Part shown: positions 20,601 through 58,803 of the stretch, piece by piece
How positions within the stretch are numbered: position 1 is the stretch's first letter
Layout: each line of letters opens with the position of its first letter
Assembly (NCBI GenBank): GCA_965112735.1
Contig: OZ218953.1
Location: 1,302,001-1,366,000 of the forward strand
DNA length: 64,000 bases
Reading direction: 5' to 3'
From: Phaeosaccion multiseriatum
Taxonomy: Eukaryota; Protista; Ochrophyta, other classes
Translations under genes and position numbers: made by a program
Notes under the pieces: model-generated
Told to the model about the DNA's origin: nothing
What the model saw: only the letters and a program-made list of their open reading frames with translations
Databases searched by the model: none

Positions 20601-21433
20601 TCTCCTCCACCTCCTCCTCCACCTCCTCCTCCACCTCCTCCTCCACCTCCTCCTCCACCTCCTCCTCTTCCTCCTCCTCCTCCTCCTCCTGATCTCGCAG
20701 CGGCTGTCTTGGCCGCTGTCCGGGCGGCGGCAGCGGCCGTGGCGCTGGCGATGAGCGCAGGAACGATGCCCTCAATAGTGTCGGGACCCAATGCATTGCC
20801 CTGTAGAGAGATGGCCCGCACACAGCCCCTGGACAGCACCTGCCCAAACTCGGTGCTGATGGCGTTGAAATTCACGTCCCCGAGACTCCGACCGGCCAAC
20901 GCGAGGGTGGAGCGAGGCGACATCTCATGACTTCCCCCACCCCCTCCTCCTCCCCCTCCTCCTCCTCCTCCTCCTCCTCCTCCTCCTCCTCCTCCTCCTC
21001 CTCCTCCCCCTCCTCCTTCTCCTCCTCCTCCTCCTCCTCCTTCTCCTCCTCGCTCTCCCATCGAACCCTGCTCGTCCGGGAGGAACGAAGAGCGTTCACT
21101 GAGTAGACTGACAGCCCCAACGCTGCTGTCGTCACCCCTGCCGGCAGCCGCTCCACCCCCGCGGGTTCCTGGGCCCCCCCCGTGGAGCCGATCCAGAGGC
21201 TTGTGTGTGGGCAAGTTGACCATGCTCCGGTCGATGTTCCCCTCCGCATCGAAGCCTCGCCCTGACCTCTTGCCCCGCAAACTGAAACTCAAACCGGGCA
21301 TGGCACTATCCACACCCAACCCCATGCTTGCTGACAGAGAGGAGGAGGAGGGGGTGATGGAGAGGAGAGAAGCCGAGCAAGAGGAAGAGCCCTGCCCATA
21401 TGCCTGCCCCTGCCCATATGCCTGCCCCTGCCT

Positions 21434-21474
<41 letters not shown>

Positions 21475-22338
21475 GTCGGTCCTCCTCCTGGTCTGTGGTG
21501 GTGGTTGTGGTGGTGGTGGCGGTGGTGGTGGTGGTGGTGGTGGTGGTGGTGGTGGTGGTGGTGGTGGTGGTGGTGAGCGAAGCGTCGAGACCCAAGGCGC
21601 CCCACTCCCAATCCCCGTCCCACGGCCATCGCCCCTTCCAGTCCCAGCGTTTGGTCTCAATGTTGTCGACAATGGCCTGCAGAGTGCTGTGCAGCTGCTG
21701 ATCCTCGTATGCGAGCAGATGCGCCGGCAGCAAAGTGACCGATTTGGTGTTGTGCTTGTTGGTCTGCCCCTGCTCCCCCTCCTCCTCCAACCCACCGCTT
21801 GGCCCTGATAGCCTGCTCTTGTCCTTGTTGTCGCCTCCTCCGCCCCGCCCTCCTCGACCTTCCCCTCCCAAAGGTGAGCTGCCGCCGACGCCGCCCCCCG
21901 CCCCCCCCGCCCCCTCTTGTTGTGGTTCCACCCTGCTCGGATCGCGCTGACCGTCCCCCCCACCCCCTCCTCCTCCTCCTCCTCCTCCTCCTCCTCCTCC
22001 TCCTGCTGCTGCTGCCGCTGCTGCTACTGCTGCTACTGCTGCTGCTGCTGCTGTATCACCAACTGCTGCTGCTGCGATCTCCGACTCGTGTCCGCCTACA
22101 GCAGTCAACCCATCCGCGCCCCCTTGCTGCTGCGTTGCCCCCAGCCCCACCCGCCCGATAACGTGCTCCAGGGGACAAGAGGAGGACTCTCCAACACCCG
22201 CACCACTAGCACTAGGGCCACTAGCACTAGGGCCACTGCTACTACCATCTCTCTCGACCGTGCCGCTTCCACTGCTCGCACGCAGCATCTCCTCCTCTTC
22301 CAACTGTTGCTGCGGCTGCTGTTGCTGCTGTATCACCA

Positions 22339-22405
<67 letters not shown>

Positions 22406-25400
22406 CTTCTTCCTGTCCACGCCCGTCATCCTCTCCCTCCTCCTATTCCTCTCCTCCCTCTCCTCCTGCTCCTCCTTCTCCATCTTGGTCATTAACCGTC
22501 TCCTCTTCTCAATCTCCGCTGCCCGCGCCTCCAAATCGGCTACCGAAGCCTGCCTCAGCTCGGGCCAGCTCACCACAATCTCCTTCTCCCAATCCTCTCC
22601 GTCCTCCCACCCACCTTGGTCCAAATCCCACCCCGTCGCGCTACTGCTACTGTCTGCATCCTCCTCCCCCTCCTCCTCCCTACCACCACCAGCCTCCTCC
22701 CCCTTCTCCTGCTCCTCCACCTCCTCCTCCACTCCTTCTGCCCAAGCTCTATCCCTAGCCTTCGCCTTCTCCCTTCTCCTCCTCCTCCTCCTCCTCCGTC
22801 TCCTCCGCCTCGCATCTCTGGTCGCCTCTTGATGTATGCGCAGGAGCAGGGCTCGGTCCTGCAGCGACACATCCAGCGGCCGAAAGCTCGAGGCCAGGCT
22901 GTTCGGCAGCTCTCGACACCGCTCTTGCTCGGCCGCCCATTCGATGCTCAGCCTCAGCGCATGCCGCACACGCTTCTCCTCCCGCACCCACGCCCTTGCT
23001 ACGAGGAAGAGCAGCCCGTCAATGTCAACTATGGCCGATTCCTTGTTGGACGAAGGGAGCTCCAGTCGCCGGCCAGTCTGTGTGGCTGACGTTGCCCGGG
23101 TGGCGCCTCCTCCCACCCGGCTGGGTCGCCCTCCTCCTCCTCCCCGCCCCCCTCCCCCTCCTCCTACTGCTCCTGCTCCTGGTCCTCCTCCTGCGCCTCC
23201 TCCTGCCCCCGCCCCCTCGGGACCCTCTCCTCCCTCGTCTTCCTCTCCTTGGACTGGAAGGCCATCCTCGACCTCCAGCGTGTCTGCCACAGACCCATCC
23301 GGAGCCGTCCACACTTGTTCAAGCCCCAGAAGGCAGAGCCTCTTTCCTTGCTCTTGTGTGCGAGGCATGGTTCGCCCCCCCTTGTTTCTCCCCCCTTCTT
23401 CCCACCCCCTCTCCACCGCACCTTCTCCTCCACTGTCGCTGTCACCTCCTCCTCCTCCTCCTCCTCCTCCTCCTCCTCCTCCTCCTCCTCCTCTTCCACC
23501 CCCTCCTCCTGCTCCTCCTCTTCGGTCTATTACCGGAGTCTGTGGGGTCGTTCGACGATGGCGGTGGGTGCGTGCTCCCTCGGAGGACCGACGGGCAGTC
23601 GAGCTTCCCCTCCCTCGCCCCCCCGCTCGCTGCTGCTGCTGACGAGTGCCACCGCTTGGGCGAGTGGACGGGGGAAGAAGAGTGCTGCCTCTGCTGCTGC
23701 TACTGTTGTTGAGGTTGCTGTTGCTGTTGTTATTGTTCCCGCTCGCTGCGGCGGTGGAGGTCGCACCAGCAGCTGTCCGCACGGTCGCCGTACCAGACGT
23801 ATTCGCTGCCGCAGCCGTATGCATACGGGCCGCCGTCGTTGTCTTGCAAGCCAGCTGCATCAACTCTCCCTCCAGCACCAGCTGCTGCTTCCGCGGCCAC
23901 GGAGGCTCGATGCCAATCTGCGCACAGGCCGGTCGGTACGAGGCCAACGCCCAGCCTCGAGAACAACGCGCCCCGTGAAACAGATGGGAGATGACCGCTC
24001 GGGCGGTGGTGAGCGAAACGGTCCGTCCGGTGCCTAGACGGGAGGCATCGAGCTTTCGTCGCACCTGGAAGCCTTTCACTGCATGCCATCCGCCCCCGGC
24101 AAGCAAGACCAACATCTCTAATACGACGGACTCAATCACGTCGCACCCCGCCACCATCACCTCTGCGTGCAGGCCCAAAATGAGGGCGAAGACGTCGATG
24201 CGCGGTTTGCCAGAGTAGCGCAAGACGCCCCCGAGGAGAGAGTTCATGTGGCGCTCACCTAACACAGTGACACAGGCACGCTTTTGCAGCTGCTGCATTA
24301 CCACCTCCTCAAACGTGAAGGGAAGCACGACAGGTGATGATGGTCCCACCCCCCCTGCCGTGACCCCTACCCCTGCCCCTACTCCGTTCGTGTTCGTCGC
24401 GCCCGGCCCAGTGACACCACCAACCCCCTCAGTGGTCGCACTGCTGCCTCCTCCTCTTCCTCCTCCTCCTCCTCCCCCTCCTCCTCCTTCTCCTCCTCCT
24501 TCTCCTCCTTGTGCTGCTGCTCCTCTTCCGATTCCTCCCTCTTCTCCTCCTTGTCCTCCTCCTTCTCCTGTGCTTCCGCCATCTCCTCCTACCTCTCCTC
24601 CTCCTCCTGCTGCTGCTGCTGCTGCTCCTGCTCCCCCCCCTCCTAGTCCCCACATGGCACCAACGCTTATCGCAGTCACAGTTGGCTGTGGATCCGGCTC
24701 GGCAGCTCGGCGGACGAGAATGTCAATCTTCCGAGCGAAGCATTCCGCGATGAAGGAATACAGCACCGCTGACGTCATCTTGTTGTCCCGCCCGTACGCC
24801 AGCCCCGAGAAGGCTGCGACACCTCCGATGCCGTTCGCTGTGGGACCCATGCCTCCTCCCCCTCCTCCTCCTTCTCCTCCCCCTCCTCCCCCGGCCGCCC
24901 CACCATTGCTGGTGGTCGCCTGTTTGATGAGGGCCTGCAAAACGTCCGGAGGCGGCGGCCACTGAGGCAACGGCCAATAGGGCAGGAGCGACCGAAAGAG
25001 CTTTCGCATCTGCTGGCGGTTGCGATGCGGAGGCGGACACGCCGGGGCTGGAGCCAAGCGTCCGCTGCCATCCTCTCCCTCTCTGGCTATACCAACCCTC
25101 TCCCTCTCTGCTGTTGCTTCTGCTCTCTCCACGCCTCCCTCCTTGGCCTCGCCGCCTTCTTTCGCCTCTCTTGCGCCCTTTTCCGCCGCTCCTCCTCCCT
25201 CTTTTTCTCCTCCTCTACGGCTTCCCACGCTTCCTGTGCTCTCTGCCACCTGCTCGCCAGCTGGGCCCTTGGTACTGTCGTCGCTTGGTTGTTGATCCGA
25301 CCGTCCAGACCCCATTCCTCCCTCCTCCTCATGGCCGGGGACAGCTACTGCACTTCCTTCCTGTGCGCTTTGAGGGCCGACACTAGAGGAAGCTGTCGTA

Positions 25401-26488
25401 TCCTCCTTCTCCTTCTTCTCCTCCTCCCTTCTCTCTTGGTGCTGCCGCCTCTCCGTCTCGCCCTGATGCTGATGCTGGTGTTGGTGCTTCGCATGCTGGG
25501 GGGGCTGGCCCTTCCCCTGCTCCTGCCCTCGCATTTGCTCGTAGTACAGCCTCCTCTCGTCGGCGTAACCCTTCTCCTCCTCCTCCTCCTCAAAGACCTC
25601 CAGCAGGTCCAGTGTTGTATCCGGGTAAGGAAGGGCGTACCCCACGCCGAGTTTGGCGATGAGAGAAGCTTTGGTGCGGCCCGCATCTCCCCCGTGCACC
25701 TTTTTAATGTCGTTCAGGGAGCCGCCGCAGATGGGGCAGCGACCTCCGCTGGCACCCGTCTGCGCTGCAATCAGGAAGAGGCGCTGCACTTCCTTGCTGA
25801 AAGTGCACTGCGCGCAAATCAAGCAGGCCATTGTGCACACAGGCTCCAGGGAGGTGGGGCCGAGGACGCTGGCGCTGCCCACATTGGCAGCGCAGATGGC
25901 ACAACTTGAGTCTTTGGCCGTGAGGTTGCGGTGAATCTGCTTGTATAAGAGCGCCGCTCGGAGAGTCGATGCAAAGTGGTCGTCTTCGTCTCCGTCTCCC
26001 TCCATCAAGTGTTTGGCCCGCCGCTCCATCTCCTCTGAGGTCCCCCCTCCCATCTTCTTTCCCACACGCTGACGGAGGTGATCTCCAGCGCCCTCTTCTC
26101 CCTTGAGCATGACTTGCTTCTGGAGCGTGTTCAGCGACATTACTAGCCTCCCCACAGTGAAGAGTTTGCTCGCATTGTGGAGCTTCTTGGTGACGCCGCC
26201 ACCGCGTCCACTCCCACCCTCTCCAGGAGTGCTCGCACTGCTCGCACTGCTGCCTGTACTTCGATCGTTCAACGAAAGAGCCGGAATTTCGTGCTGCCTC
26301 TGCGAATGGGGACTGTTGCAGCTGCTGTTGCTTGCTTCTGGAGCTTGGACCAGAAGGTCGAACATGCTTCGGTTTTCTTTTGTCAGCGCTTCGGGTACTC
26401 GCGACACGGAAGGCCTGCGCTTCTCATCTCCTCTATTCTCCGCTGCGCATACATTGACGACGAAAGCGGACCCCTTCCTTGCCTGCAT
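17638..26488 (-). CDS. ~2400-aa protein: N-terminal RING-like Cys cluster, long low-complexity middle, C-terminal RI-like leucine-rich repeats
   Basis: Exon 1 spans 26488-~20343. Exons 19866-19794, 19465-19003 and 18166-17638 splice in frame. LRR motifs: VRAISLQGNALG, LLKLDLSNNNMGPKGA, LVWLSTNGNSLGDKG, LRTLDLAWNSI, LTCLDVSYNSL, LRKVDISGNALGPKA. Cys cluster: CAIC...C..CLICAQC...CPIC. Confidence 0.8.
18208..18683 (+). repeat. Long perfect (GGGA)n microsatellite (~470 bp)
   Basis: Directly visible in the last intron of the LRR gene, where it reads (TCCC)n on the sense strand. Similar tracts lie at ~7416-7580 and ~8966-9195. Confidence 0.97.
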
Positions 26489-26755: not shown

Positions 26756-29313
26756 ATGGAGGGAGCTCTGGCGGCCTATCTCTGCCCCAATGCAAGAGCC
26801 AAGCGCTCCTTCGTGGCCTTCCTTCGTCTTGCTGGACTTTTCACCGTGGCCCAGAGCTTCCAGCAGGTGCGGTGTGGCTGGGTCTTTGTGTGTGCGCTGA
26901 CATATTTTGAAATTCGCGAGAGGAGGGTTCCCGAGGCGAACTTCTTTCCCCTTCCCCTCACTCACTCACTCACTCACACACTCACTCTCTCATGCCATAC
27001 CCCACGCACCCTCTGCCGTTTGATCCCTCGCTCTTTACCCACGTGGGGTCCAGCAGGGTCTGCATGTAGGCTCCGCTCCTGCTGCCGGGGCCTCTGCACG
27101 GGCCTCCACGTCGACCAACCCTACCACCCCCACAACAGCATACAGGAGATGGACACATGCGGGTCGGGGTACATCTTCTCTTCCTGCCGGGGCTCACTCC
27201 TGTCCGTTCCCTTCCTGTGCGCCTTTTTCAAGCGGCAGAAGGAGGCGGCGAGTGGCCGGAGTGGTAAGAGCGGCGGAGGGGGCGCGTACGGGAGGGGGAA
27301 GAGTGAGTCGGGGTGTTCGCTTGTTCGGCTTGTTCGACGCGAGGAGGGGTAAAGACAGTGAAGGAGGCGATGATGAAGTCTGGAAGGACAAAGGTGAAGG
27401 CAACGAGGAGGTGGTGCAGGAGGAGGAAATGGAGGAGGAAGTCTGGGAGGACCACGAGGAGGTGATGAAGCAGGATGGAGAGGAGAAGGAGGATGAAGCC
27501 TGGGAGGACTATGAGGAGGAAGAAGAGGACGATGAAGGGGGTGTAATCTGGGAGGACACTGAAGAAGGCACTGAGGAGGAGGAAGACGAGGAGGAGGAGC
27601 AGGAGGAGGAGGAGGAGGAGGTTAGAGAGTCGCCAGTCATTCGTGAGAAACGTGGGAGGAGGGGGGGGAAGAGAAACCGGGACGACGACGGCATTGACCC
27701 CTTCGCACCAGCAGCGGAATACGCCTTCCCGGTGATGGGTGGCTTCGGGTCCATGGCAGACGCATGGGGGGCTGCTCAGGCGGAGGTGGAGGCCGACACT
27801 CGTGGGGAGAGGGAGAGGAAGAAGCGCTCGGAAACCTGGGCCAGAAGGCTGGGGGGGCTTGGGAACATTAATGCTGCTGCGGCGGCCAAAGCGGCAGGCT
27901 GGACCACAGGGGGTGACGGTGACATTTACGACGAGAGTGATGGTGGTGGTTTTGGCGACGATGCGTATGAGGAACATGCATATCATGATGATGATCATGA
28001 TCATGATGATGAAGATGATGATGATGATGAAGATGATCACCTTGACGTGGATCGGCCCTTTACGGCGGAGGAGCACGAGTTCTTCATTGAGGCGTGGCGG
28101 GGGCAGCAGAGCCGAGAGACGAACGAGTACTTTGAAGTCGTCAAGCATCTGTCCCCCTCGGAGCTCATCGGCCGTTTCATGCGCACGGCTCCGGCGAGGG
28201 TGCAAGAAGCCGTTCGTTCCACGGTGTTGGGGCTGTTGGGGACTCTGCCCCGGCACGCCTTTGAGACCACCGCCATCGGCACGGGAGACGCGTTGGCCAA
28301 CCTCATGTTCCACTTGCAGGTAAATGTCTTAAGTGCCGGGCCGTTAGTTTGGTGTGTCCAAGGGGGGGGGGAGGGGGGGGAGAGGGAGGGAGGGAGGGAA
28401 GGGGGGAGGGAGGGGAGGAAGGAAGGAAGGAAGGAAGGAAGGAAGGAAGTCGGTCCATTCGTCGGTCGGTCAGTCACCCGTTCAACCCGTCAGTCATGGA
28501 GGGGGTGCGAAGATTGGGTCGTGGCTCTTTCTTCCCTTCAGCCACACCACACACCACTCATTCGAGGTGGGGCGCCGCGGCCAGCGCAGAAGATTTTCCT
28601 TCCTCCCTTCCTTCCTTCCTTGCTTTAACAACTAACATTTCTTTTCCGTCTTGTTGCTGCTTGCACACCCTTCCACCAACCAAATCCGTTTTCTCTGGCC
28701 ATCTGTGAAAATTCACAGATGACGGGCTACATGTTCAAGAATGCCGAGTATCGCCTGAGCCTTCAATCGGCCCTCAGAGAGCCCTATGGTACGCCATTGG
28801 TGCCGGCATGTGTAGACATGGCATGTGCTTTATCGAATAGGTACCTGGCTGGTACCTTTTCACTCACACCCTATCTCTCGCTCTCTCTCTCTTCCTCCTC
28901 CTGCCCCCCCCCCCTTCTCCTTGCTGTGTCCTGCCTGCCCTCCTGCCCACCTTCCTGTGTTGTTGTCGAAGGCCTCCCCCCCGGCCGCAGCACCATGACC
29001 GAGTTTGAGGAGAAGATGATGGGCGAGATGCTGGGGCCCAATGGAAGCTTGGGGAATGATGCCAAGCAGAGAACGAGACCAAAGATATCGGGCAGGATCA
29101 AGCTCACGTATGAAGACAACAAGGTTAGTCAATGACGGAGGGAAGGAGGGAGGGGAGGGAAAGGAGGGAGCGGGGGAGTGGAGGGAGGGAGGGAGGGAGG
29201 GAGAACCGAAGATGGAGTGGGTAGCGTGCAATTCTGCTCATCTCTCCCTTGTGCCTCTGTGTGTGTGTCAGTGACAACGGATGCGCACGATTTCCCTCGT
29301 TCCTTATACTACG

Positions 29314-31335: not shown

Positions 31336-33644
31336 TCTGCTGCCCGTCGGTACTGCCGCTCCTGCAGCAGCGCCCTCATCGGGGCAATACCCGTCCCTGG
31401 TCCCACCATGATGATTGGGGTGGAGGGCTCTGCCGGTAGGCGGAAGGTCGACGCCTTGACAAAGATCCGACACGTGTGGTCTGCTGCTTCTTGTTGTTCA
31501 GCTGCCGGCCCTACGCCCTCCAACCCCGCTAGGAAATTAGTGCAAATGCCTCGAAACTCTCGACCTTGGCTGTGGCTTCTCGCCAAGACGGCGACGGTGA
31601 TGGCGGCCTGTTGCGGGTGCACGCTACTGCTGCTGCTAATGGTGTAGTAGCGAGGGTGCAGCCTGGGCAGGGTGTGCAGCAGTGTGTCTAGGGGGATGTG
31701 TAGCGAGGAGAGGTCCCCCAGCAGCAGCTCCAGCAAGGTGCGCTGCTCGTCCTCCACGTGGTGCCTGGGGGAGTGAAGAGGAATGAAGACGAGAGAAGGG
31801 GGGAATAGGAGGGTGGAGAGGATTAAAGGGGAGGGGGAGGAGGGGGAAGGAATGAAATAAGTGAAGAGAAGGGGTTTTACTGAAGGTTAAAGGATGGGGA
31901 AGGATTAAATGAATGAATGAATGAATGAATAGAGAGAGGATAGGTCCGCCCGCACCACTGAGACCTCAATAGACGTACTCACGTCTCCACTCCGCACCCG
32001 CAAAGGAAAATACTCGCTTGAGGTGAGAGAGGGAGAGAGAGAGAGAAATGAACTCATAAGTCAGCAAACTCTCCTCACCTGAACAGTTCCTTTGCCTGCG
32101 GTTCTCTGCTCACTATGTGTTCCAGCCACCGCCGCTGAGCCTTGTCCTTGACGAGCGGACGGAGTCTCTCCAGCAGCGACCGGTGGGGTACGCTGTTGAA
32201 GTCCACATAGGACGTTAGCGCCTCCTGGACAGAGCAGGGAGTGGGGAACAGGGCCTTGCCGTTACTCTCGGAGCTGTAGTCCAGTGTGAAGGAGGCCTGC
32301 GTGGAGAGAGGGAGGTGGGGAGGGAGGGAGGGAGGGAGGGAGGGAGGGAGCGAGAGAGAGACGGGGGGGCGGAGAAGGAGAAAGAGAGAAGGAGAGACAG
32401 AGAGACGGAGGGAGGGGGAGGGAAGTGAGAACAAGGCCAATTGGACAGCACGGCATCGCCCCGCCCGTCCCCGCCCCAGCGAAGCTTCCGAAACCGTCCC
32501 TCGGCGCCCTTGCTCTTTACCCCCCCCCCCCCCGCCGCTCCCTCCCTTCACCACGCCGCACCTGCAGCTCGTAGCCCATATGCCTGGCGAGGCTCTCCAC
32601 GCTACCGGGGCTGTTCTGGGGCATGACAGCGAGGTTGTCGGCCGTTTCGTAGGTAACACCTGTTCCCCGGAGGTCGATCTCCACGTGGCGGGTGCTGCCC
32701 GTGCCCTCCTTGTCGCTGTTTCGCAGCTCCCTGTTGACCGCCACCCTGGCCTCCGTGCTCTCCCAGTAGAAGCGCGTGGACGAGGCCGCCTGGCTCGCCG
32801 GCGTTCGAGTCTCTCTGGCGGCGGCTTTGGCACTCAGGTAGCGGATGCTGAAGGGGGCGGCCAAAGCCTCCACTTCGGCTGCCTCATCCGCTGCCGCGCT
32901 GCTGCCTTGACGGTTGCCCTCCTCGTCTGCAGCGGTCAGCCCTATGAACCTCTCGACCAAGGCGGGCCAGAGCTTTTCCTTCCAAGCCTCAAAGTCCTCA
33001 TCTAGGTCCGCGTCGTCGTCTCCCTCCCCATACTCGAACATCCTCTCCCCTCCCAGCACTTCCATCTGCTTGTCGGTGGCCTTTCCCATTCGATTGTAGT
33101 GCTCGTACTGCTTGTTCCCCAGACCAAAGACGGCAAAGTGAAGACCGACCATCGGCCGATCCGCTTCCGTCGCCTCCGCCGCGTTTTCCTTCTCCTCCAG
33201 CGCTTCCGCAGCCTTGGACACGTATTTCTCAAAGCCCACTGCGTTATCGGTAGGGTCCCCCTCCCCATACGTAGCCATGAGGAAGATGACCTTGTCTGCG
33301 CCCGTCAGTGCCTCCACCGTAAAGTCTTCCAGGTCGAGGACGGTGGTGCGAAAGCCGTGTCGCTTCCCCTCGGCCTTGAGCGAGTTTGCAAAGCCCTCTG
33401 CCGTCCCCGTCTGGCTCCCGAAACATACCACGAGGTCTCCTCCCGGGGTGCTGCTGCTACTACTGCTGCCATTCCGCCCATCTCGACCACTAGACGCCTC
33501 AATACCGTTGCCGCTGGCGATGGCAGCCCTGCTTTTGTTGCTGCCGTCCGTCTCCTTGTCCCGGCGAAGCAGCAGAGCAGCGGCGCTGGCCAGCACCACC
33601 GCCCCTAGCGCCACCCCTGCGTAGAGCATAGCGTCGGCGTCCAT
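30867..33644 (-). CDS. CPR: NADPH-cytochrome P450 reductase; 3 exons (~33644-32562, 32296-32079, 31764-30867)
   Basis: N-terminal membrane anchor. FMN motifs FGSQTGTAEGFA, MATYGEGDPTDNA, FAVFGLGNKQYEHYN. FAD/NADPH motifs PRYYTISSS, MVGPGTGIAPMRALLQER, LFFGCR, VYVCG. C-terminus RYVQELWS. Confidence 0.97.
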
Positions 33645-33960
33645 GTCCTCCTCCTGTGCGGGGAGGGGGGGTGTATTTACCAAAGACGGTTCGTCGCGTG
33701 GCGGGGCCCTGGCCTAAGCAAGAGCGCAATGAATTGCACTGTTTGGGATTGGGGCAAAGCTTCTTCGGCATTTGGACGCCACCGCTGCTTCCCGCTCTTG
33801 TCTTTCTTCTGCTCTTGTTTCTCCTCCTCCTTGAAGCGGATGGTCCTGCTTGTGCTGCCGTTTGTTGCACGTAGTGTAAGCAGTCTTTAGAAGAGGGCGA
33901 AGTGCCTTTCCTCAGGGGGAGGGCCGTCGAGAGGAAGGCCCCCTTTTTGAGTTGGCAACC

Positions 33961-36900
33961 ATGATGCTTTGGCCGAGTACGAGGGAGGGAACTGGTATGG
34001 GCCCCGAAGCAGCAGCGGGGGCGGCAACAAGCACAGCAATAGCGGCGACCACTGCTCGAGTGGACCCCGAGCGCGCCTTGGAGTTCATGTCGGTGGATGC
34101 CGCCCGTGAGCTCCTGGAGCAGACCCACACCCAAGTGGTTGGCAAGCAAACCGAGCTTCAGACCATGGTGGGATCGCGATACCATGAGATTATAGAGTCG
34201 GCCGACAGCATCCTATCCATGAGGGACTCTGCTGCCAATGTCATGCACTTGCTGGTAAGTAAAGTAAGAGGTTTGCTGTCTTCCGCTTTGCACAGATGTG
34301 GCTTTCTCACTTGCCAACACGAGCAGCTTCCTCGTTTGGCTGACCCGTCTGGCTGCTGCTGCTGCATTTCGCAAGGCTCGAAGATGGAAGTTTGGCCCTC
34401 TCTCACCCGTTCGTTCTTCTGCACCTCCTCTTGCTGCCACTGGTGCTGCTGCGCTGTTTTGGCTCCACCGGGACAGGCGGAGCTACCGCCAGAGTGTGCA
34501 TCCGTGTTTGACACGCTGCAGAGGGATATCGAGTCGGGCTGGATATTAAACCACTCCCAGCAGGGAAGGGGCGGCACGAAGAGGAGCAGGGAGAGCAAGG
34601 GAGGGCCGGAAAGCGAGGAGGGGGGGCAGGGGGGCACAACGGCAGGAGTAGTAGCAGAGGGACAGGAGGACATAGATGAGGACAGAAAGAAGGAGGAGGA
34701 CGAGGCCGCAACCTCCCGCTCGTCCATGATGCTGATCCTCAACGCCCCCTCCGCCATCTGGGCCGCCCTGGACGACAGCCGCTTCCTGGAGGCCGCTCGG
34801 CTGCTGGTGCACTGCCAGTTGGAACTCGCCATGAAGACCCAACCGCTGCAGCTCGACCCGGGTGGGCCCAACGCAGCCTTTATCCGCAGCCAACGCACTT
34901 CTCTGGAGCATTTCCCCCATCGCATCCTGTCGGGGGCGAAGGCCGCGCTCGATGTAGGGAGACCCTCTCCCGGCAGCCTCACCACCGCTGGAAGAAGAAC
35001 GAGGAGCAGTGGCGGCGGTGGTGGTGGTGGTGGTGGTAGGGGAGGAGGAGGGGGGGACTCGGAATGCGCCGGGGCACTGGCGGCGATTTTGCTTTTGGAG
35101 GCGGCCAACACTAGAACCTCTCGCAGCAGTAGCAGTGAGAAGGGCAGTGAGAAGAGCAGCGGGAGTGTGAGTGTCAGTGTGCTGCGGAGCGTGTTGGAGG
35201 TGCTGCTCCGCCACAGAGGGCGTGCCGTGGCCCTTCTGCTACGGAGGGGCATGCGGGGCAGCAGCGGCACGAGGGGCGGACAGCAGGAGCAACAGGTGGT
35301 GATACAGCAGCAGCAAGAGCGGTGGAAGGGTATGGAGGCGGCTCTGCGTGTGGCTGTGCGCTGCGTCCAACAAACGATTTTGGATGTAGCCGCTCTCTTT
35401 GGCCCCGCCCCGCCGTCACCAGCCGCAGCAGCGGTAGCAGCAGCAGCAGCAGCAGAAGTTGGTGATACAGGAGCTGTTGGTGATACAGGAGCAACAGCAT
35501 CTTCGTGCCGCTTGACCAACATCGTGCTTGAGGTGTGTGTGGCTGCGTCCTCCTCCTTACAGTTATAGCCCCACTTACCTCTCCCTTCGTCCCACTTCAC
35601 AGCCCACTTCCTTACCTCTCCCTCCTTCTCGCTGGTGGTGCTGTGAAGCCTTGCTTTTCCTTCTCTTTGTTCCTCTTCCATCTTCCATGCACACAACTTT
35701 TTGCATCTTCCTCCTAACCACCCTTGCTCCACGCTCCCTCTTCCCTCCTTCCCGCCCCTCCCTCCCTTCCTTCCTTCCTTCCTTCCTGCCGCCCTCCCTT
35801 CCCTCCCTCCCACCGTCCAGACGGCGGCAGGAGGAGGCGCACCTCCCCTCTTCCTGGAGGGGCAGTTCCGCCTCAGCGATGACGTCATCAAGGAGCGCCT
35901 CACCGTGTGGCTGGGCCTCGTGGTGCCTCGAGTGCGTAAAGCAGCGACCCTACTGCTAAGAGGAGTCAGCGACGCTCCCTCTCTGGCCATGTTTCGTCAG
36001 TCTCTGTGGAGGGCGTCCGCAGCCCCGACCATTGTTGCTACCACCGAGACGAAGGCGGCGACTGCGGGGTCAGCAGCAGTTGGTGGTACGGCAGGAGCAT
36101 ACCTGGGGCTGCTGCGTACGGAGTGGGCGGAGGCTTGTGCCTTTGGGCTGGATGCGAGGGCCCTAGCGAAGGCGCTGTTGGGTGGGGGTGGGAAGGAAGA
36201 AGGTGGTGGTGCGGCGTGGGGCGGGACGGTTAGCGTCACCAAAGGCGAGGGATTGCAACTGTGGCCTTTGCTCTTTGCAGATATTTTCGCACATTTGACG
36301 GAGCAGCTTCTGCGAGACAACTTGCGAAAGGTGAGTGGGTGGGGTGGACGGGTGCTTGTGGGTCAGTGAGTGGGTGGGTGGGTCAGTGAGTGAGTGAGTG
36401 AATGAGTGAGTGAGTGAGTGAGTGAGTGAGTGAGTGAGTGAGTGAGTGAGTGGGTGGGGTGAACGGGTGCTTGTGGGTCAGTGAGTGAGTGAGTGAGTGA
36501 GTGAGTGAGTGAGTGAGTGAGTGAATGAGTGGGTGGGGTGGACGGGTGCTTGTGGGTCAGTGAGTGGGTGGGTGGGTCAGTGAGTGAGTGAGTGAATGAG
36601 TGAGTGAGTGGGTGGGTCAGTGAGTGAGTGAATGAATGAGTGAGTGAGTGAGTGAGTGAGTGAGTGAGTGAGTGAGTGGGTGAGTGAGTGAGTGGGTGGG
36701 GTGGACGGGTGCTTGTGGGTCAGTGAGTGAGTGAGTGAGTGAGTGAGTGAGTGAGTGAGTGAGGGAGTGAGCGAGTGAGGGTGGGTGAGTGAGTGAGTGA
36801 GTGAGTGAGTGAGTGAGTGAATGAGTGGGTGGGGTGGACGGGTGCTTGTGGGTCAGTGAGTGGGTGGGTGGGTCAGTGAGTGAGTGAGTGAATGAGTGAG

Positions 36901-49800: not shown

Positions 49801-50705
49801 GGCGGGGAGAGAGAGGGAGCGAGGGAGGGAGGGAGGGAGGGAGGGAGGGGGGAAGGGAGAGAGAGAAAGGGAGGGAGGGAGGGAGGGAGGGAGGGAGGGA
49901 GGGAGGGAGGGAGGGAGGGAAGGGGGAAGGGAGGGAGAGAGGGAGGGAGGGAGGGAGGGAGGGAGGGAGAGATGGAGAGAGAGAGAAGAGAAGTGGAATT
50001 GGAACCTCTCTGACTCTGCTGCTCCTTCTTCCTTTACTGCTACTGCTCTTGCTTTGCGCTCTGCTCCCTCCGGCCCCTTGTGGTCTGGACTGGACTCGAC
50101 GGGTCTTCACGGCGGATCGCGAAACAGGGAGGTGAAGGTCGGCGTGGTGGAAGTGTCTTCCTTTCACCGAGACGCGGTGCCGCCTTTTCAGCTCGTGACT
50201 GAGCCCCCCGAGGGAGGGGCCGGACAAGCGCAAGGCCTTCTCTATGCAAGGGGAAAGAGCAAGGCATTGGTCAAGAAGAAGGGGGGCGTGGTGCAAGTGT
50301 CCATGAGGAAGGTCAGGGGCAAGAACGTTACGTTTATTGACGGACTGGAGAGCTGGGGCTTGTCAAAGGACGACATGCAGGTATGGAAGTGTGAACGAGA
50401 GGGTTCAGGAAGAGAAAGGGGGGATCGAAGCCTACCACGTGTGCCCAAGTACCCCCTCACGCCCCCTCGTCTTTTCTTACGTACTTGTCGTCTTTTCTTA
50501 CGTACTTGCCGGCTCTGACTAACGTAGTATGCATAGATTGTATTGAAAAATCCCCGCCGCCCCCCCCATGCGGCTTTCTGTGTTTGGCCAATTGGCGGAG
50601 TGGCGAGTGGCCGTGACGGACAAGTCAATCCCTGTCTGTCTGCCCATCTCTCTCCTCACTCGTGCTCGCTCGCTCCCTCGCCGCCCTTGCCCCCTCTTGC
50701 CTTGG

Positions 50706-50760
<55 letters not shown>

Positions 50761-51068
50761 GTCTGATTGGCCCTGACGGACTCTGACTGTCTCTGACTTG
50801 TGACTCTGACTGTGACTCATTGATGGACGACCGATGCGAGTAGGACGTGGCCAAGGACTTCCGCAAGCGCTTCAGCGCGAGTGCCTCCGTGAGCGAGAGA
50901 GGAGGCACACAGGGCGGTCGCAGCGATGTGCGAGGCAAGCTGTGGAGTCTGCAGGTGCAGGGCAAGTATGCGGAGCAAGTAGGGGCGGCGCTGAGGGAGA
51001 AGGGGGTGACCAAGGTGGACGTCAGCACCAAGGGACTCAATAAGGCAGACCGGGCCGCCAATGTATGA
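46884..51068 (+). CDS. EIF2D: Eukaryotic translation initiation factor 2D (ligatin): pre-PUA/PUA, winged helix, SUI1
   Basis: Pre-PUA/PUA motifs KESEKRKFRE, GADLFLPGV, PFQKGDLC..APFAVG, GTGVMVIHHLFDALW. Winged-helix motif IKDTRWKKASNFL. SUI1 motifs KNVTFIDGLE, AKDFRKRFSASASV, LQVQG. Confidence 0.9.
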
Positions 51069-51327
51069 TGTGAGGGATCGATGGAGGAGGAGAGGAGAAG
51101 GGGGCGTGCTACCGGTGCCGAGGTAGAGAGAAGACGTGGACATATTACGTATATTATGTATATAACATTAGCTCCTATAAACCGTTCAGCGCTGAATCGG
51201 CAGCCTCTGCTAAGGCCGTCCTCTCATCATCTGTGAACATCTCTTCACGATGTGCATCCTTACCGATGGTTTCAGGCATGTGCAATCCGGGGATGAATAA
51301 ATACAAGAAGTCGGCCACTTCAAAGTA

Positions 51328-51852
51328 AGCGTTCGGCCCCGTGCACGCCTAGGGGCCTAGGCCTATTTTGGAAAATTGCCCGGCCTAGCGAGGGCCGTAG
51401 GCCCTCGGCCTATTTATAGGCCGCCTAGGCGGCGGCCTAGGTGGGGGCCGGAGGCCCGCGGCCTAGGGCAGACGCCAACAAGGCGCAGGTCCAGGGCGGG
51501 AATATGCTCATATGCCCCTGACCTGGCCCGGAACCCGCCCAAGTGTCGTCAGTTTTAAGCAAATGTATTGCATGGGATAAGTGAGGAGTAGACTTGGTTC
51601 GTGTTGTCTCTTTCCGCCTCGCTGGCCCTACGAGGAGTGCAGGCCTACAGGTGTGCTGCTACCCACTGGCTGGGCGGCACCACGCACGCGCCCACGGTCA
51701 CTGGGAGGCTGCCTAGAGGCGGGCTAAAGGCCGCCTAGGGCTGAAAAGTGAGCGGCCTAGCGGCCTAGAGCCTAGGCCGCTAGGCGTGCACAAGGGTACT
51801 TAAGAAAACGTCGTTTTCTTAAGTACCCTTGGCGTGCACGGGGCCGAAAGCT
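51328..51852. mobile_element. MITE-like non-autonomous element (~525 bp) with ~34-bp terminal inverted repeats; the right TIR is interrupted
   Basis: Left end gcgttcggccccgtgcacgcctaggggcctaggc (51329-51362) matches the reverse complement of 51770-51791 joined to 51840-51851, with 2 mismatches. Subterminal GGCCTAG motifs repeat near both ends. No coding capacity. No clear outer TSD. Confidence 0.7.
51792..51830. mobile_element. 39-bp perfect palindromic insertion flanked by a 9-bp direct repeat (ggcgtgcac)
   Basis: aagggtacttaagaaaacg-t-cgttttcttaagtaccctt, with direct repeats at 51783-51791 and 51831-51839. Confidence 0.75.
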
Positions 51853-51964
51853 CGAAAGCGTGTTGAAGGGAAAACAAAGTCAACAAATGTCGATACCGAT
51901 TTTCTTTGGCTCAGCGCCCCAGCCCCTCTCGGGGTATAATGATCGTATAATTGCCCTCTTCTCG

Positions 51965-54476
51965 ATGCCCAACATGCTCCTGCGGTTGCTCTTGCTGCTG
52001 CTGGCCGTGGTGGGGAGCTCCGCTGCGGTGACATGGAAAGACGGCCCCGGTGCTCGCTGCTCGGATCGGCAAAGCCTCACCTTGGAAGACGCAGTTGAAA
52101 AGCTCGGTGAGTGTGGTGGGACAGCAGACAGAGCACCTCGGGACAAGCGGATGATGAAGGCATGTGCGGGTTGTGTACGGCGTGGCGCACAGAGTGTTGA
52201 GGACACTCACTGCAGCAGCCGGTAGTTCAGTCGTTCATCCCTTTTTGCCTTTCCCCTTTGCTTGCGTCTCTAACCTCTCTCTCCCTTCCCTTACCTCTTG
52301 CTGCCTTCCGTTTTTGTATGTCCCAGCTGCCAAAGTGCCGACGCAAGGAACTGCGGGCCGGAAGCTCGCCGCCACCGCCCTGTCTGCCAACTTGTGAGTG
52401 CGCATTGCCCATCCATGCACGCTCTCCGCCCTCGCACGCTTGAGATGGATGTACGCTTCACCACCATGTAAACCAGTGCAGACTACCGTTACTCACTCAC
52501 TTCCAACCCCTGTTCCCTTGCAGGAGGCCCGATTCGCCGTCCGTGGTGGCCGTCTTTGGGGAGTCCGATGGCCCTGCCCTGGTGCAGGGGCTGGTGGAGG
52601 CGCTGTTCTTCGACGCCAACGACCCCACGCTCTGTGTCGACATGCGGCGCTACAGCAAGTCCCCGCTGAAGCTGAAGGAGAAAATCCACTCCCACATTGG
52701 GGCGTGTGGGGCGCAGAGCGTCATTGTCCTGGAGCACATGGAGGCGGTCCGAGGGAAGGACTTGCGCGTCATGGACTTGTTCCTGGAAATGTGGAACGGA
52801 GAGAGGTAACGAACGAACTACCTCATTCACACACCCATTGGCTGACTCACTCACGCATGTACGCGCGCATTCACTCACTCACTTACCCACTTACTCACAA
52901 ACACTCACTCACTCACTCACGCACTTCCTGACTTGACTGACTGACTAACCCACTCTATCTCCAAGGCTCAAGTCCGACCAATCCCTGTTGTGTGTGCTTT
53001 CGTTTTCTTGTCTATGCGTCATATCCTTGCCCCCCTCTCCTCTTCCCCCTGTTGCTCAATGTGTCGTAACACGCAACATCCGTACTACTCCTTCGCCCCT
53101 GCACTCACTGCTTCTTTTTAACTTGCCTCTTTGTCTGCTGTTTCTGCCTGCCTACCGCATACACGCGCCTCTCTCTTGTGGTCAGATCCTTCTCGGCAAG
53201 CGACAACGAGGTGCTCAGCGCACAAGGCGTACTGTTCGTCCTTCTCTTCGAGACCGCAGAGGTCCTAAAGGAGACAGAGGCAGAGGAAGGAGAAGAACGA
53301 GCAGCTGCAGCGGGCACAGGAGGTTCCGCGCCGGAGGGGAGGGATTGGAAGAAGAAGCTGCAGCAGTGGTGGGCCTTCGACGGAGAGGAGTTCACGGAAC
53401 AAGCGTTCGCGGGGCGTGTAGCGGATGCCGTCATCCTACGGGAGCCGGGACAGGGAGGGGGGGAGGGCGCGAAGGGAGCACGAGTTGAAAGGGTGTGCAA
53501 AGGTGAGGCACGAAGGCTGGGACGTGACTTGGCTCGGACGGACTTCCTCGAGAACATAGTAGTGATGGTGACCGGCGCATACGGCTAAAGAGTGGGCGAG
53601 CGGGTGGGTGGGTGGGTGGATGTCTGTGCGAGACACACGAGAACTCGTCTGTACTGTTCGGGCTGTAGTGGTGCCCCTCAAGTGTGCTTGCTTTGTCCTT
53701 TCCCCTCTTGCCTCTCTGTGCCTTTTGGTGCGTTGTCTCACGTCTCAGGGATGAGCGTCACAGCGTCTCCCTCCGCGGCCTCTTCCTCCCTGGGGCCGCT
53801 AAGGAAGGCGCTAGAGTCAGCGCTCGCAGGGCTCAAGCAGTGGCTCGAAGGGCCCCTTCCGGCGGTGGCGGCCCTGCTCTCGGCGAGCAGTGGTAGGCAG
53901 CAAGCGGGGCTGGCCACAATGGTTGTTGTACTTGTGCTGGCTTTGGCCATCCCCTCCATGGTGTTGAGCCATCCCCAGGGCGACGGTGGGGTAAAGAAGG
54001 GTACCGTCCAGCCCAACGACAGTAACGGTGTGGTTAGTCATCCAGGACGACGAGGAGGAGGAGGAGGAGGAGGAGGAGGAGGAGGAGGAGGAGGAGGAGG
54101 AGGAGGAGGAGGAGGAGGAGGAGGAGGAGGGACAACAGCAGTAGGAGGGAAGAAGGCGGGGGTGAGCAAGGAGGGGACGGCAACACCACAGGCTGCAGCT
54201 CCAAGGAAGGCCAAGCCTGCCATTCAAGGCCACCGTATTTACGGCGGCGTGGAGTACAACTTGACTGATACGTGGCGCGAAGAGGACGACACGAATAAGT
54301 ACCTAGAGGAGTGCGTCACGATTGCTCGGGCGGGGCAGGAGAGCATCGATGAGTACTGGGACGGCTTGTATGAGAAGCACAGGGGGAAGTTGGTCAACGC
54401 TATCAATAACCACACAAACCTGTTGGTAAAGCAGATGTGGCTTGCTGCGCAAGCGCGTAAAGCAAGCCGATCCTGA
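51965..54476 (+). CDS. Type I membrane protein: signal peptide, torsin/LAP1-like degenerate AAA+ domain, TM helix, C-terminal chromo-like domain; 5 exons
   Basis: Exons ~51965-52106, 52328-52394, 52524-52805, 53187-53502 and 53749-54476 splice in frame. Signal peptide [17 protein letters not shown]; TM helix LATMVVVLVLALAIPSMVL. Domain calls are by visual motif similarity. Confidence 0.7.
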
Positions 54477-54831
54477 ACAATTTGAGGAGCAGGAGCAGTG
54501 GCAGGAGCAGGAGCACGAGCAGATGTGGAGGAGGGGGGGCATTTCCCTCCCTGCTGCCTCCCAGCGAGGAAGGGGGCAATCTTTCCATGCGGAAGGAAGC
54601 CCTCTTTGAAGGAATGCCTCTTGAAACATCTCAAAGGAAGAAGGAAGCGGTGTGGCTCTGATCCGAGAGGCGCAGCGGGGCAGGAAGGGGTGAAGGAAGG
54701 AAGGGAACTCAGCAGGGCCGGCAGGACAATGGGAGCGCGAAGCAGCGGCGGAGCAGAGGAGCAAGGCAACAAAGCCCCCCCCCGGTGCATGCATTCTCAA
54801 TCATCCTTCGAGAGAGGGAGAGAGAGACACA

Positions 54832-54870
<39 letters not shown>

Positions 54871-55540
54871 TGATTGTGTTGCCGAACCCTGCGATGGCCC
54901 AGAGCGGGGGAGGAAGGACATGCCCACTGCACACTTTGGGTGTCGTCAGCCACTCAGTCACTCAGTCAGGCAGGCTGTGAAGCAGAGAGGCAGTGAGGCA
55001 AATCTCCCTGAAGCGCTCTCTGGACCTTGCGCCTCTGCACCGCTGGGGCTGTCTTTTAGGAGCCGATTGGGTGAGTGTGCGGCAGTCCTTCCCGTGGGTA
55101 CGCTCTCACTGCCTTCACTGAGGTTGGGGAGGCAGGGGGGGGGGGGAGTGCTTCCTCAGGACAGTGGGATGAGAGGCCTCCTTTGTTCATCGTCTGGTGG
55201 CGTGCTGACCTTCCTCTCTTACCACACGGGGGGGGGGGGCTTGTCGCCTGGGGTCTCCTGGGGTCGTGGCCGGAAGGGGGGGCTACAGGGGGCGGGTGCT
55301 GCTCCTTGCCTCGTCCGCGGCTGCTGCGGGAGTGCAGGTGTGGATGGGTGGGTATGGGCGGAGAGCGCTACCGGGGACCACCCCGAAGAAGAGAGAGAAT
55401 GAATGAAAAAATCGATCTCGAAATTAAAATCGAGAGGCTGACGCTTGCAACTTTTGAAATGCCCCACACCAAACGGCCTCCTTTCACCTTCTTCACAGGT
55501 CTCTTATCGACTGCCGCTGCTGCTCTCCCTCGGGCATCAA

Positions 55541-56218
55541 ATGAGTGAGTACGAAGAGTCTGTTGTCCAGCAGACAGAGCCTGTGGTAGCAGCAGTGGAG
55601 CCTACGGTCCGAGCTGCAATCAAAACAGTCACAGAGACAATGCCGGCACAAGCTGCCCTGCCCACTCCACTCGCTGACTTCGTCTCCCAGCTGGGGATTG
55701 ATGTGGGGGACATGGATGAGACGAAGCTGATGCAGGGCGTGGTAGGCGCGGTCGTGCTGGGTATTCTCTTGATAGTGTTCATATTCCTGTGCTACTCGGG
55801 AGGGAGGAGTGGCAAGAAGAGCACAGCAGGGTCCAAGAGAACGGAGGCGCCTGCGACCCCTTCCAAGCTGAGGAAGGCGGCACCGAACCCTGCGTCTGCC
55901 ACCAGATCAGCGACACGGGGATCACCGACCCGGAGTGGAGCGGCCACGGCGGGCAATGGTGCGGCCAAGGAGGAGCCAGAGAAGGTCTCGGGAGACGCCA
56001 TCGAGGACCACAAAATAACCGGCAGGTCCCTGTACTACTTGATTCGAGACACCGCGGAGTGGAAGAAGGAGCCTGAGACGATAGCGGAACTCGGTAGTGA
56101 AGTTGTGGATGCTTATTGGGAGGAACTGGTGGAAAAGCACGACACGGACGGGACCGTCATCAAGTGCCGCCGATCTGCAGCAGTAAAGGCGCGGGTTATC
56201 GGAGCAGGTGAGGGTTAA
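55541..56218 (+). CDS. Single-exon, single-pass membrane protein with a basic S/T-P linker and a C-terminal chromo-like domain
   Basis: 225-aa ORF from ATG at 55541. TM helix GVVGAVVLGILLIVFIFLC; TPSK and SPTR sites in the linker. The C-terminus aligns with that of the upstream gene. Confidence 0.75.
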   Translation: MSEYEESVVQQTEPVVAAVEPTVRAAIKTVTETMPAQAALPTPLADFVSQLGIDVGDMDETKLMQGVVGAVVLGILLIVFIFLCYSGGRSGKKSTAGSKRTEAPATPSKLRKAAPNPASATRSATRGSPTRSGAATAGNGAAKEEPEKVSGDAIEDHKITGRSLYYLIRDTAEWKKEPETIAELGSEVVDAYWEELVEKHDTDGTVIKCRRSAAVKARVIGAGEG

Positions 56219-57205: not shown

Positions 57206-58803
57206 TCACCCAGTGATGCTGCCCAGCAAAGCCCCCCCGTACATAAACGTCCTTCCCGTCTCCTCCAGACACTCATCCTTCTCCTCTCGGCTCCACTCCT
57301 TGGCCTGGGCGTCAATCTGCTTGCGCACGCCATCCAGCAGCTCTTTCACGTCTCCGTCCCACTTGTAAAAGTCAAGCTGCGAGGGAGAGGGCATTGGAGG
57401 GGGCAGGCAGAGAGAGAGAGAGAGAGAGAAAGGCAGTCAGTGGCTTTGCATGGGGGAGCACATCACATCGGTCAGTAGGCAACACACAGAAAATGGGTGC
57501 CGTGAAGGTCGGCACCACCACAGAGTCAACTGTAGCCAAGCAAGCGACAGAGAGAGGGATAGGCACACACGCCCACTGAGCACACGGCACAGCATGACTT
57601 ACCGTAGTTCCGTCCAGACACGCCTCGGACACTTTGCGTCCAATCATCTGCCCTCCTGCGGTGTGCGCAAAGTAGTGATTGTAGTAGTGGCACATGAAGG
57701 CAGGAATGCTCTTCTGAACGGTTTCATCGATAAAGTCGGCATAGCCCTGACCCTTGTCCGAGGGACCTGGTGCGGTGAGGCTGTAAGTCTCCTCCATCCA
57801 CTTGATGTCTTTCTCAAGTACTTGCACCCGCTCCAGGCCTGTGGAGCGGAATTGTTCGAGCTTTGGAGAGGATTTCACTCCCTGCCGTAAGGTGGTGTGT
57901 TGTGTGGTGCATCAGAAAGAGTGCGGGTATGTGCACCAACACAATGTGGGTATGCGCATCAACACAACAAAGAAGAGAGGGCAGCCAACGGGGGGTGGGG
58001 CAATGGGGCACCAGAGCAGCGGTAGAACAACAATCGCAGCGAGGAGGGAGGGAGGAGGAGGAGGAGGAGGAGGAGGAGGAGGAGGAGGAGGAGGAGGAGG
58101 AGGAGGAGGAGGAGGAGGAGGACGGGGTTCAATATGTACATCTCTCAGTCGCGATCAAGCTCAATGCGCCGACCGATTTGGCCACTCGGTTCTTAGCGAG
58201 CTCGCACAGACAATCCATCAATAGGCTCGGGCGAAGAAACAAACGCTACAGCAAAGCTTTGGTAGGAAAAGTTGTAGACACAGGTCACTCAGCCAATGTA
58301 CATGTATGGAGGAGGCCAACTTACGCACCCACACGCACCTCTTCTAAAGCGGAGTATACCACCTTACTGTCCACCAAAAATTGCAGATACCCTTCTCTGG
58401 TCGGGCTCCACTCGCTAAACTTCTTTCCCTCATTCTTCTTCTCTCCTTCCTTCGGAGCCTATGGCACACAACACACGAGAAGAGAGGACAGCCGGGTAGG
58501 CAGCCAGGCAGGAAGAGGGCAGAAAATACGATGGGAGGTGTGAGATGGATCGGAAAGGAACAGACAGCTCCAGGCTCGGAGGTGGAAGGAGTTTACGATT
58601 GTCTTTGAGGCAGTAAAACGCCAGTACGATGACGTGCTGGCCTTGCTCCCAAGCAGCTAAGAGCCCCCTCTAGTCAAGCGGCAGGCCGAAGAAACGAATA
58701 TCCCCCCTCCCCTTCCAGATCCCGTACTGACGAACCGCTGGCCGTGTAACATGGACAGACACACGCACGACGCACGCACGCACAGACACCGAGAAAAAGA
58801 GAA

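Follow-up and report, generated by a model that had tools for sequence, protein, structure and literature searches.

A putative single-pass membrane protein gene of Phaeosaccion multiseriatum whose torsin-like motif order stays at chance level

The stretch of Phaeosaccion multiseriatum DNA analysed here (contig OZ218953.1, positions 1,302,001 to 1,366,000, 64,000 nucleotides in all; hereafter the window) carries on its plus strand, at 51965-54476, a spliced open reading frame (ORF) of five exons. Read directly, all exon borders are GT..AG, the phases are compatible and 511 amino acids (aa) follow one another without a stop. The initial annotation had taken the product for a torsin activator of the LAP1/LULL1 type with reversed membrane topology. 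In our analysis, an even chance is given to a genuine nuclear gene, restricted to its lineage, that encodes a secretory-pathway protein with a single membrane pass, probably a non-catalytic type I adaptor, and the likeness to torsin and ClpB profiles is, by the sequence tests applied, at chance level and not significant.

All five exons lie on the plus strand. Exon 1 (51965-52106; GC content at third codon positions, GC3, 0.77) provides the start codon, a signal-peptide-like hydrophobic N-terminus and Cys32. Exon 2 (52327-52393; residues 48-70; GC3 0.73) holds a putative helix a0 with a V..Q..A pattern resembling V.GQ..A of torsin and ClpB, and it is required, since without it exons 1 and 3 would not share one frame. 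The strongest coding signal belongs to exon 3 (52524-52805; residues 70-164; GC3 0.87), which contains a strand with a degenerate P-loop position (52543-52572), a ClpB-like F.D...DM..Y and a Walker-B-like hhhhEH (52717-52746). Exon 4 (53186-53502; residues 164-270; GC3 0.65) encodes the very hydrophobic strand VLFVLLFE (53229-53252), an insert rich in Glu, Ala and Gly, GRVADAVIL with R241 (53412-53438; Arg codon 53415-53417) and Cys268. Retention of the putative intron 4 (53503-53748) extends the exon 4 frame by 28 codons to a stop at 53586-53588, and would give a soluble product lacking the transmembrane (TM) helix. That helix (53910-53966) lies in exon 5 (53749-54476), after a linker and ahead of a (GGA)n run coding for 26 Gly (54054-54131) and a tail whose module of about 53 residues (54222-54380) is common to the next gene. 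An in-frame ATG stands at 53752, 3 bases past the exon 5 acceptor.

The GC contents at the first, second and third codon positions were.64/.38/.87 in exon 3 and.54/.40/.71 in the tail, next to.66/.38/.74 in a flavodoxin exon of this window that Pfam confirms and that served as reference, while the four introns are flat (GC.48-.60) and without periodicity. Given this coding-type periodicity and a frame that can be spliced, the gene and its peptide are real sequence features. That the five exons form one transcript we consider likely.

Several repeats occur in and near the gene. The Logan contigs all break on either side of the (GGA)26 run (54037 and 54145), so that its length in the assembly is uncertain, and a similar (GGA/GAG)n run occurs at about 58080-58200. 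A (CACT/GACT)n-like microsatellite in intron 3 (52870-52985) and a (GGGT)n-like one in intron 4 (53590-53625) reach 5-70 times the single-copy depth with many loose contig ends, and are genome-wide simple repeats.

The encoded protein would thus be laid out as signal peptide, luminal domain of about 250 aa, TM helix, 26-Gly run and tail. By hydropathy, the signal sequence occupies residues 4-22 (51974-52030; Kyte-Doolittle value, KD, 2.31) and the TM helix residues 324-342 (KD 2.66), after which Lys and Arg follow; both elements had been named in the initial annotation, and both were recovered. The peptides quoted there were likewise found in the 511-aa protein, namely LAAKVPTQ at 47, VVAVFGESDG at 77, SVIVLEHMEA at 135, VLFVLLFE at 179, KKKLQQWW at 219 and GRVADAVIL at 240. 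Within the predicted luminal part there are four cysteines (32, 107, 131 and 268), none of them in the putative helix a1 (residues 87-98). Direct reading gives FGESDGPA instead of GxxGxGK[ST] at the Walker A position and VIVLEH instead of hhhhDE at Walker B, in keeping with the degenerate Walker motifs described earlier, a description that is trivially true of any non-ATPase. Since the P-loop lysine, the Walker-B acid pair and the sensor-1 Asn are all absent on direct reading, the domain cannot be an ATPase. As for the reversed topology that had been claimed, the signal peptide does come first and the TM helix does lie downstream of the domain; the predicted type I topology holds only if the five exons form one transcript.

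Downstream and on the same strand lies a single-ORF gene of 225 aa (55541-56218), in which a TM helix comes after a short N-terminal segment and the tail again contains the C-terminal module. The two copies of this module share 40% identity over 53 aa (BLASTP, E = 1e-7). The neighbour is without homologues elsewhere and without a family assignment, and no relative was returned when it was used as query in the 5.8-billion word-index search. The idea of a chromo-like tail module was set aside, as it found no support in Pfam, in language-model features or in the low-confidence, mostly helical structural model.

For the Pfam, NCBIfam, PDB, structure and protein-library searches, the queries were the exon pieces and not the whole spliced protein. 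In Pfam (hmmscan, E <= 10), no family was assigned to exons 1, 3 and 4, and exon 5 gave a Gly-rich artefact only; in NCBIfam, exons 3 and 4 had no match and the other pieces gave only rows at chance level. Comparison of exons 3 and 4 by phmmer with all PDB chains (E <= 10), among them TorsinA, LAP1 and LULL1, returned no torsin, LAP1 or LULL1. An exhaustive phmmer search with exon 3 against 1.84 billion representative proteins gave 0 matches; not even its own protein was hit, and the proteins of the source genome are therefore missing from that library. The word-index search (5.8 billion) with the exon 5 ORF returned no relative either, the Gly run having probably swamped the word index. Because the protein, family and PDB searches were all without relatives, the locus is, as far as these comparisons reach, either lineage-restricted or from a lineage that has not been sampled.

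Structure prediction was of little help. AlphaFold modelled exon 3 alone with a predicted local distance difference test (pLDDT) score of 43.9 and the tail module, aligned with its paralog, with 47.6 and mostly as helices, and because of such low pLDDT no fold search was run on either model. The use of torsins as a pseudo-alignment for folding exon 3 was rejected as circular. In the ESM-Atlas feature search, no usable result came from exon 4 or the tail.

We then come to the profile tests, for which 110 torsins were retrieved from a single seed, L017, after a scan of metagenome contigs for HGW.GTGKN; contigs L002, L006, L007, L009, L010, L012, L013 and L016, which carry vertebrate-like torsin exons, were left out of the seeds. 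The seed itself (L017:1861-3132) is an intronless mollusc-like torsin, 99% identical to P0001 and 68% to a Mya arenaria torsin-2A-like protein, and its N-terminal TM anchor indicates a membrane-anchored rather than a soluble protein. The torsin motifs cited in the initial annotation match the consensus of the 110 sequences. Against the spliced protein, the full torsin hidden Markov model (HMM) scored 1.2 bits (E = 0.006 for one comparison) with an alignment covering only residues 115-161 (52657-52797), up to and through the Walker-B position, and from the other protein segments the colinear partners were not recovered with the torsin profile. With hhalign the match was lengthened through the hydrophobic b4 strand (P = 0.03, probability 1.6%), and the best single torsin of the 110 reached E = 0.22. 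Set against the window's full background of 805 stop-to-stop segments with a length of 50 aa or more, the exon 3 segment ranked first with the HMM of the torsin AAA core (5.2 vs 4.1 bits). Its E-value of 7e-4 multiplied by 805 comes to about 0.6, and this first rank is therefore at chance level, since the best random segment of 805 would be expected to reach about as much. The ClpB-D2 HMM (80 genomes) gave E = 0.06 and a combined torsin/Clp/Lon HMM E = 0.019, so that the torsin, ClpB-D2 and combined profiles together span E = 0.001-0.06 per single comparison.

Profile-global alignment to the torsin large subdomain yielded 15.8 bits, a score reached by none of 150 complete shuffles (z = 5.4) and none of 100 block shuffles. 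We dropped the significance derived from shuffling as misleading, because natural decoys score as high or higher: E. coli Ffh (17.7) and PpiD (17.4), neither of them an AAA protein, stand above the candidate, true AAA+ domains (Lon, ClpX, ClpB) reach 41-82 in the same test, and the candidate falls in the top 1-6% of 256 length-matched natural windows, varying with the gap costs. These scores weaken further, as the gene had been picked for this very likeness. With every profile test at chance and no match in Pfam, NCBIfam or PDB, the torsin/LAP1 reading of the domain appears as an attractive pattern match without statistical support. It must be added that weak sequence scores say little against a pseudo-ATPase of the LAP1 kind, since the AAA+ fold of LAP1 was itself established by its crystal structure (PMC4358337).

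How does the predicted protein compare with the systems it recalls? The reference for LAP1/LULL1 was the luminal activator domain of TOR1AIP1/2 (PDB 4TVS, 5J1S; Pfam LAP1_C). Like it, the candidate is predicted to have a membrane-anchored luminal domain of about 230 residues, which lacks the Walker A lysine, has a degenerate Walker B reading hhhhEH (the LAP1 counterpart being hhhhHR), is without the small C-terminal AAA+ subdomain and places an Arg some 27 residues ahead of the Cys at the domain end, the LAP1 pair being R563 and C582. The absence of canonical nucleotide-binding motifs including Walker A, the hhhhHR at Walker B and the absence of the small subdomain in LAP1 are documented (PMC4358337). 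Unlike LAP1/LULL1, the exon pieces show no detectable sequence similarity to that family and the fold is a prediction; a signal peptide and a C-terminal TM helix (type I) replace the N-terminal TM helix of LAP1 (type II); the putative a1 has no Cys for a disulfide of the C424-C582 type, with Cys268 standing at the domain end; and the host is not an animal. By the tests run, then, the protein does not appear to belong to the LAP1/LULL1 family, similarity being absent and the predicted topology opposite.

With torsins (PF06309 / PF21376) the candidate would share the targeting to the lumen by a signal peptide, the colinear motif order and a best local likeness that leads up to and across Walker B and takes in the Cys ahead of strand b3. 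It differs from them in the absence of GxxGxGKN, DE, the sensor-1 Asn and PFLPL, in its chance-level scores, and in that the C-terminal subdomain, sensor-2 Cys included, is absent altogether and a TM helix and a long tail stand in its place. Judged by these motifs, it is not a torsin, since the catalytic motifs and the C-terminal subdomain are all absent. To the second nucleotide-binding domain (NBD2) of ClpB/Hsp104 (AAA_2) it is closer than to torsin in F.D...DM..Y (a1-b2) and in F..xR(I/V).D..V.. near the Arg finger.

Under the type I adaptor reading, a cleavable signal peptide would place the domain of about 250 residues in the lumen of the endoplasmic reticulum (ER) or in the perinuclear lumen, where alternating hydrophobic strands and amphipathic helices would form a non-ATPase module. 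The C-terminal TM helix would leave the Gly-rich tail, with its module of about 53 residues, facing the cytosol or nucleoplasm, and the protein would then most likely act as a non-catalytic membrane adaptor, its tail module binding a cytosolic or nuclear partner and its luminal domain a luminal one.

A number of points weigh against this adaptor reading and have to be set beside it. Its mechanism is one that we infer, and the protein may work in this way or otherwise. The four public runs that contain the locus are DNA contigs, unspliced through the introns, and give no RNA support for any junction. Aligned with torsin and ClpB by way of the torsin profile, the protein shows its motifs in the same colinear order, helix a0 through strand b5: V..Q..A stands for V.GQ..A; P..P, a hydrophobic strand and G occupy the b1/P-loop position; F.D...DM..Y reads as in ClpB; a Cys precedes S-hhhh-EH at Walker B; and a very hydrophobic b4 is followed by F..GRV.D.VIL. 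At a1-b2, likewise in colinear position, lies the stretch that the ClpB-D2 HMM matches best. LAP1/LULL1 have a strictly conserved Arg where helix a5 ends, which is the arginine-finger position. In a gap-optimised alignment that is not significant, R241 stands one profile column past ClpB R756, which we take to be the Arg finger of NBD2, and reaches the same column only after a manual register shift. The ESM-Atlas neighbours of exon 3 were all AAA, AAA_2 or AAA_5, with scores of 0.84-0.87; as these scores (below 0.9) and the 132-161 shared features (against the 170 typical of true members) lie under the calibration levels, they are a lead only. If the protein were purely an orphan, the colinear motif order and the AAA neighbours would both be coincidences. 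A last point concerns exon 5, which begins with an ATG, mirrors the layout of the neighbouring gene and has its tail module (E = 1e-7).

The last of these points is also what favours two genes. Exons 1-4 would then give a soluble product, secreted or ER-luminal, that stops at 53586-53588, and exon 5 would be an independent tandem relative of the neighbour that starts with the ATG at 53752, which would make the type I topology an artefact of the gene model, independently of the question of fold. The exon 4 frame does continue through the first 28 codons of the intron, where GC3 is 0.68, and the junctions are without RNA support. Still, the stop and the following ATG would be just 164 base pairs apart, whereas the nearest same-strand ORF boundaries measured lie about 1.0-1.4 kb from each other (54476 to 55541, and 50518 to 51965, the upstream ORF of the latter being unconfirmed as a gene). 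Both splice signals, GTGAGG at the donor and ..CTCAG at the acceptor, are canonical, and the phases agree, which by chance happens in 1 of 3 cases; on balance we hold two genes to be possible and yet doubtful. Chance frames and splice-like sites in GC-rich DNA, with no functional gene at all, would account for the failure to find a homologue or an RNA run, but hardly for five phase-matched exons, for a GC3 of up to 0.87 with a GC2 of 0.38 in exon 3 next to flat introns, for a classic signal peptide and TM helix, or for a paralogous tail module next door, and such a non-functional locus seems extremely improbable. The remaining rival concerns the domain itself. It could be a degenerate AAA+ large subdomain from the torsin/ClpB (HCLR) clade that is nucleotide-free and lacks the small C-terminal subdomain, is anchored by its C-terminal TM helix and offers R241 as an Arg finger to a torsin-like ATPase of the alga. 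For it speak the colinear likeness from a0 to b5, the first rank of exon 3 among 805 segments, the reach of hhalign into b4, the ClpB-D2 stretch at a1-b2 and the AAA neighbours of exon 3, together with a signal peptide leading into the lumen, a compartment for which no AAA+ residents other than torsins are described (PMC7175109), and the parallel of LAP1, which likewise has no Walker A, hhhhHR at Walker B and no small domain (PMC4358337). As an explanation of the locus we judge it unlikely, somewhat more so than a bare AAA+-derived fold of decayed torsin/ClpB type in the luminal domain, for which we would allow a modest chance at most. The fuller claim of a type-I-anchored, nucleotide-free AAA+ domain descended from a torsin/ClpB-like ancestor, with R241 as the Arg finger for that ATPase, appears quite improbable, and a function as torsin cofactor is, in our estimation, just as hard to credit.

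The remainder of the window provides the setting. Just 5' of the gene, at 51700-51840, lies a very high-copy repeat with a word depth of 250-440 times the single-copy level in the DNA runs; it contains a palindrome (51783-51839), one contig per run has a 1-base insertion after 51818, and it looks like an element of the miniature inverted-repeat transposable element (MITE) type. An exon on the minus strand at 57372-57878 weakly matches heme oxygenase (Pfam PF01126, E = 1.2e-4), and the minus-strand ORF at 32517-33683, which contains Flavodoxin_1 (E = 1e-30) and the beginning of FAD_binding_1, points to a gene of the diflavin reductase type. Also on the minus strand, 20063-26488 is an unbroken ORF of 2141 aa with a weak LRR_6 match only, an unusually long exon for an intron-rich region. 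ORFs on the plus strand carry DUF760 (27252-28628; E = 2e-9) and the N-terminal domain of Vps51/Exo84 (33952-35568; E = 4e-5).

According to a review, every metazoan has torsins together with their cofactors (PMC7175109); the pairing of torsin with a catalytically dead activator is described as an animal system, and in our literature search torsin was not mentioned together with stramenopiles. As it stands, the gene described here appears to represent a lineage-specific membrane protein with an eye-catching motif pattern, at chance level when set against natural decoys. Were the torsin-cofactor reading nevertheless true, the design of a torsin with an inactive partner would have arisen outside animals, anciently or convergently, and with a topology opposite to that of LAP1/LULL1. 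It would be a second independent case of arginine-finger donation by an inactive partner, and, with a true pseudo-ATPase of the activator kind in an alga, the evolution of the AAA+ machinery of the nuclear envelope and ER would have to be seen differently.
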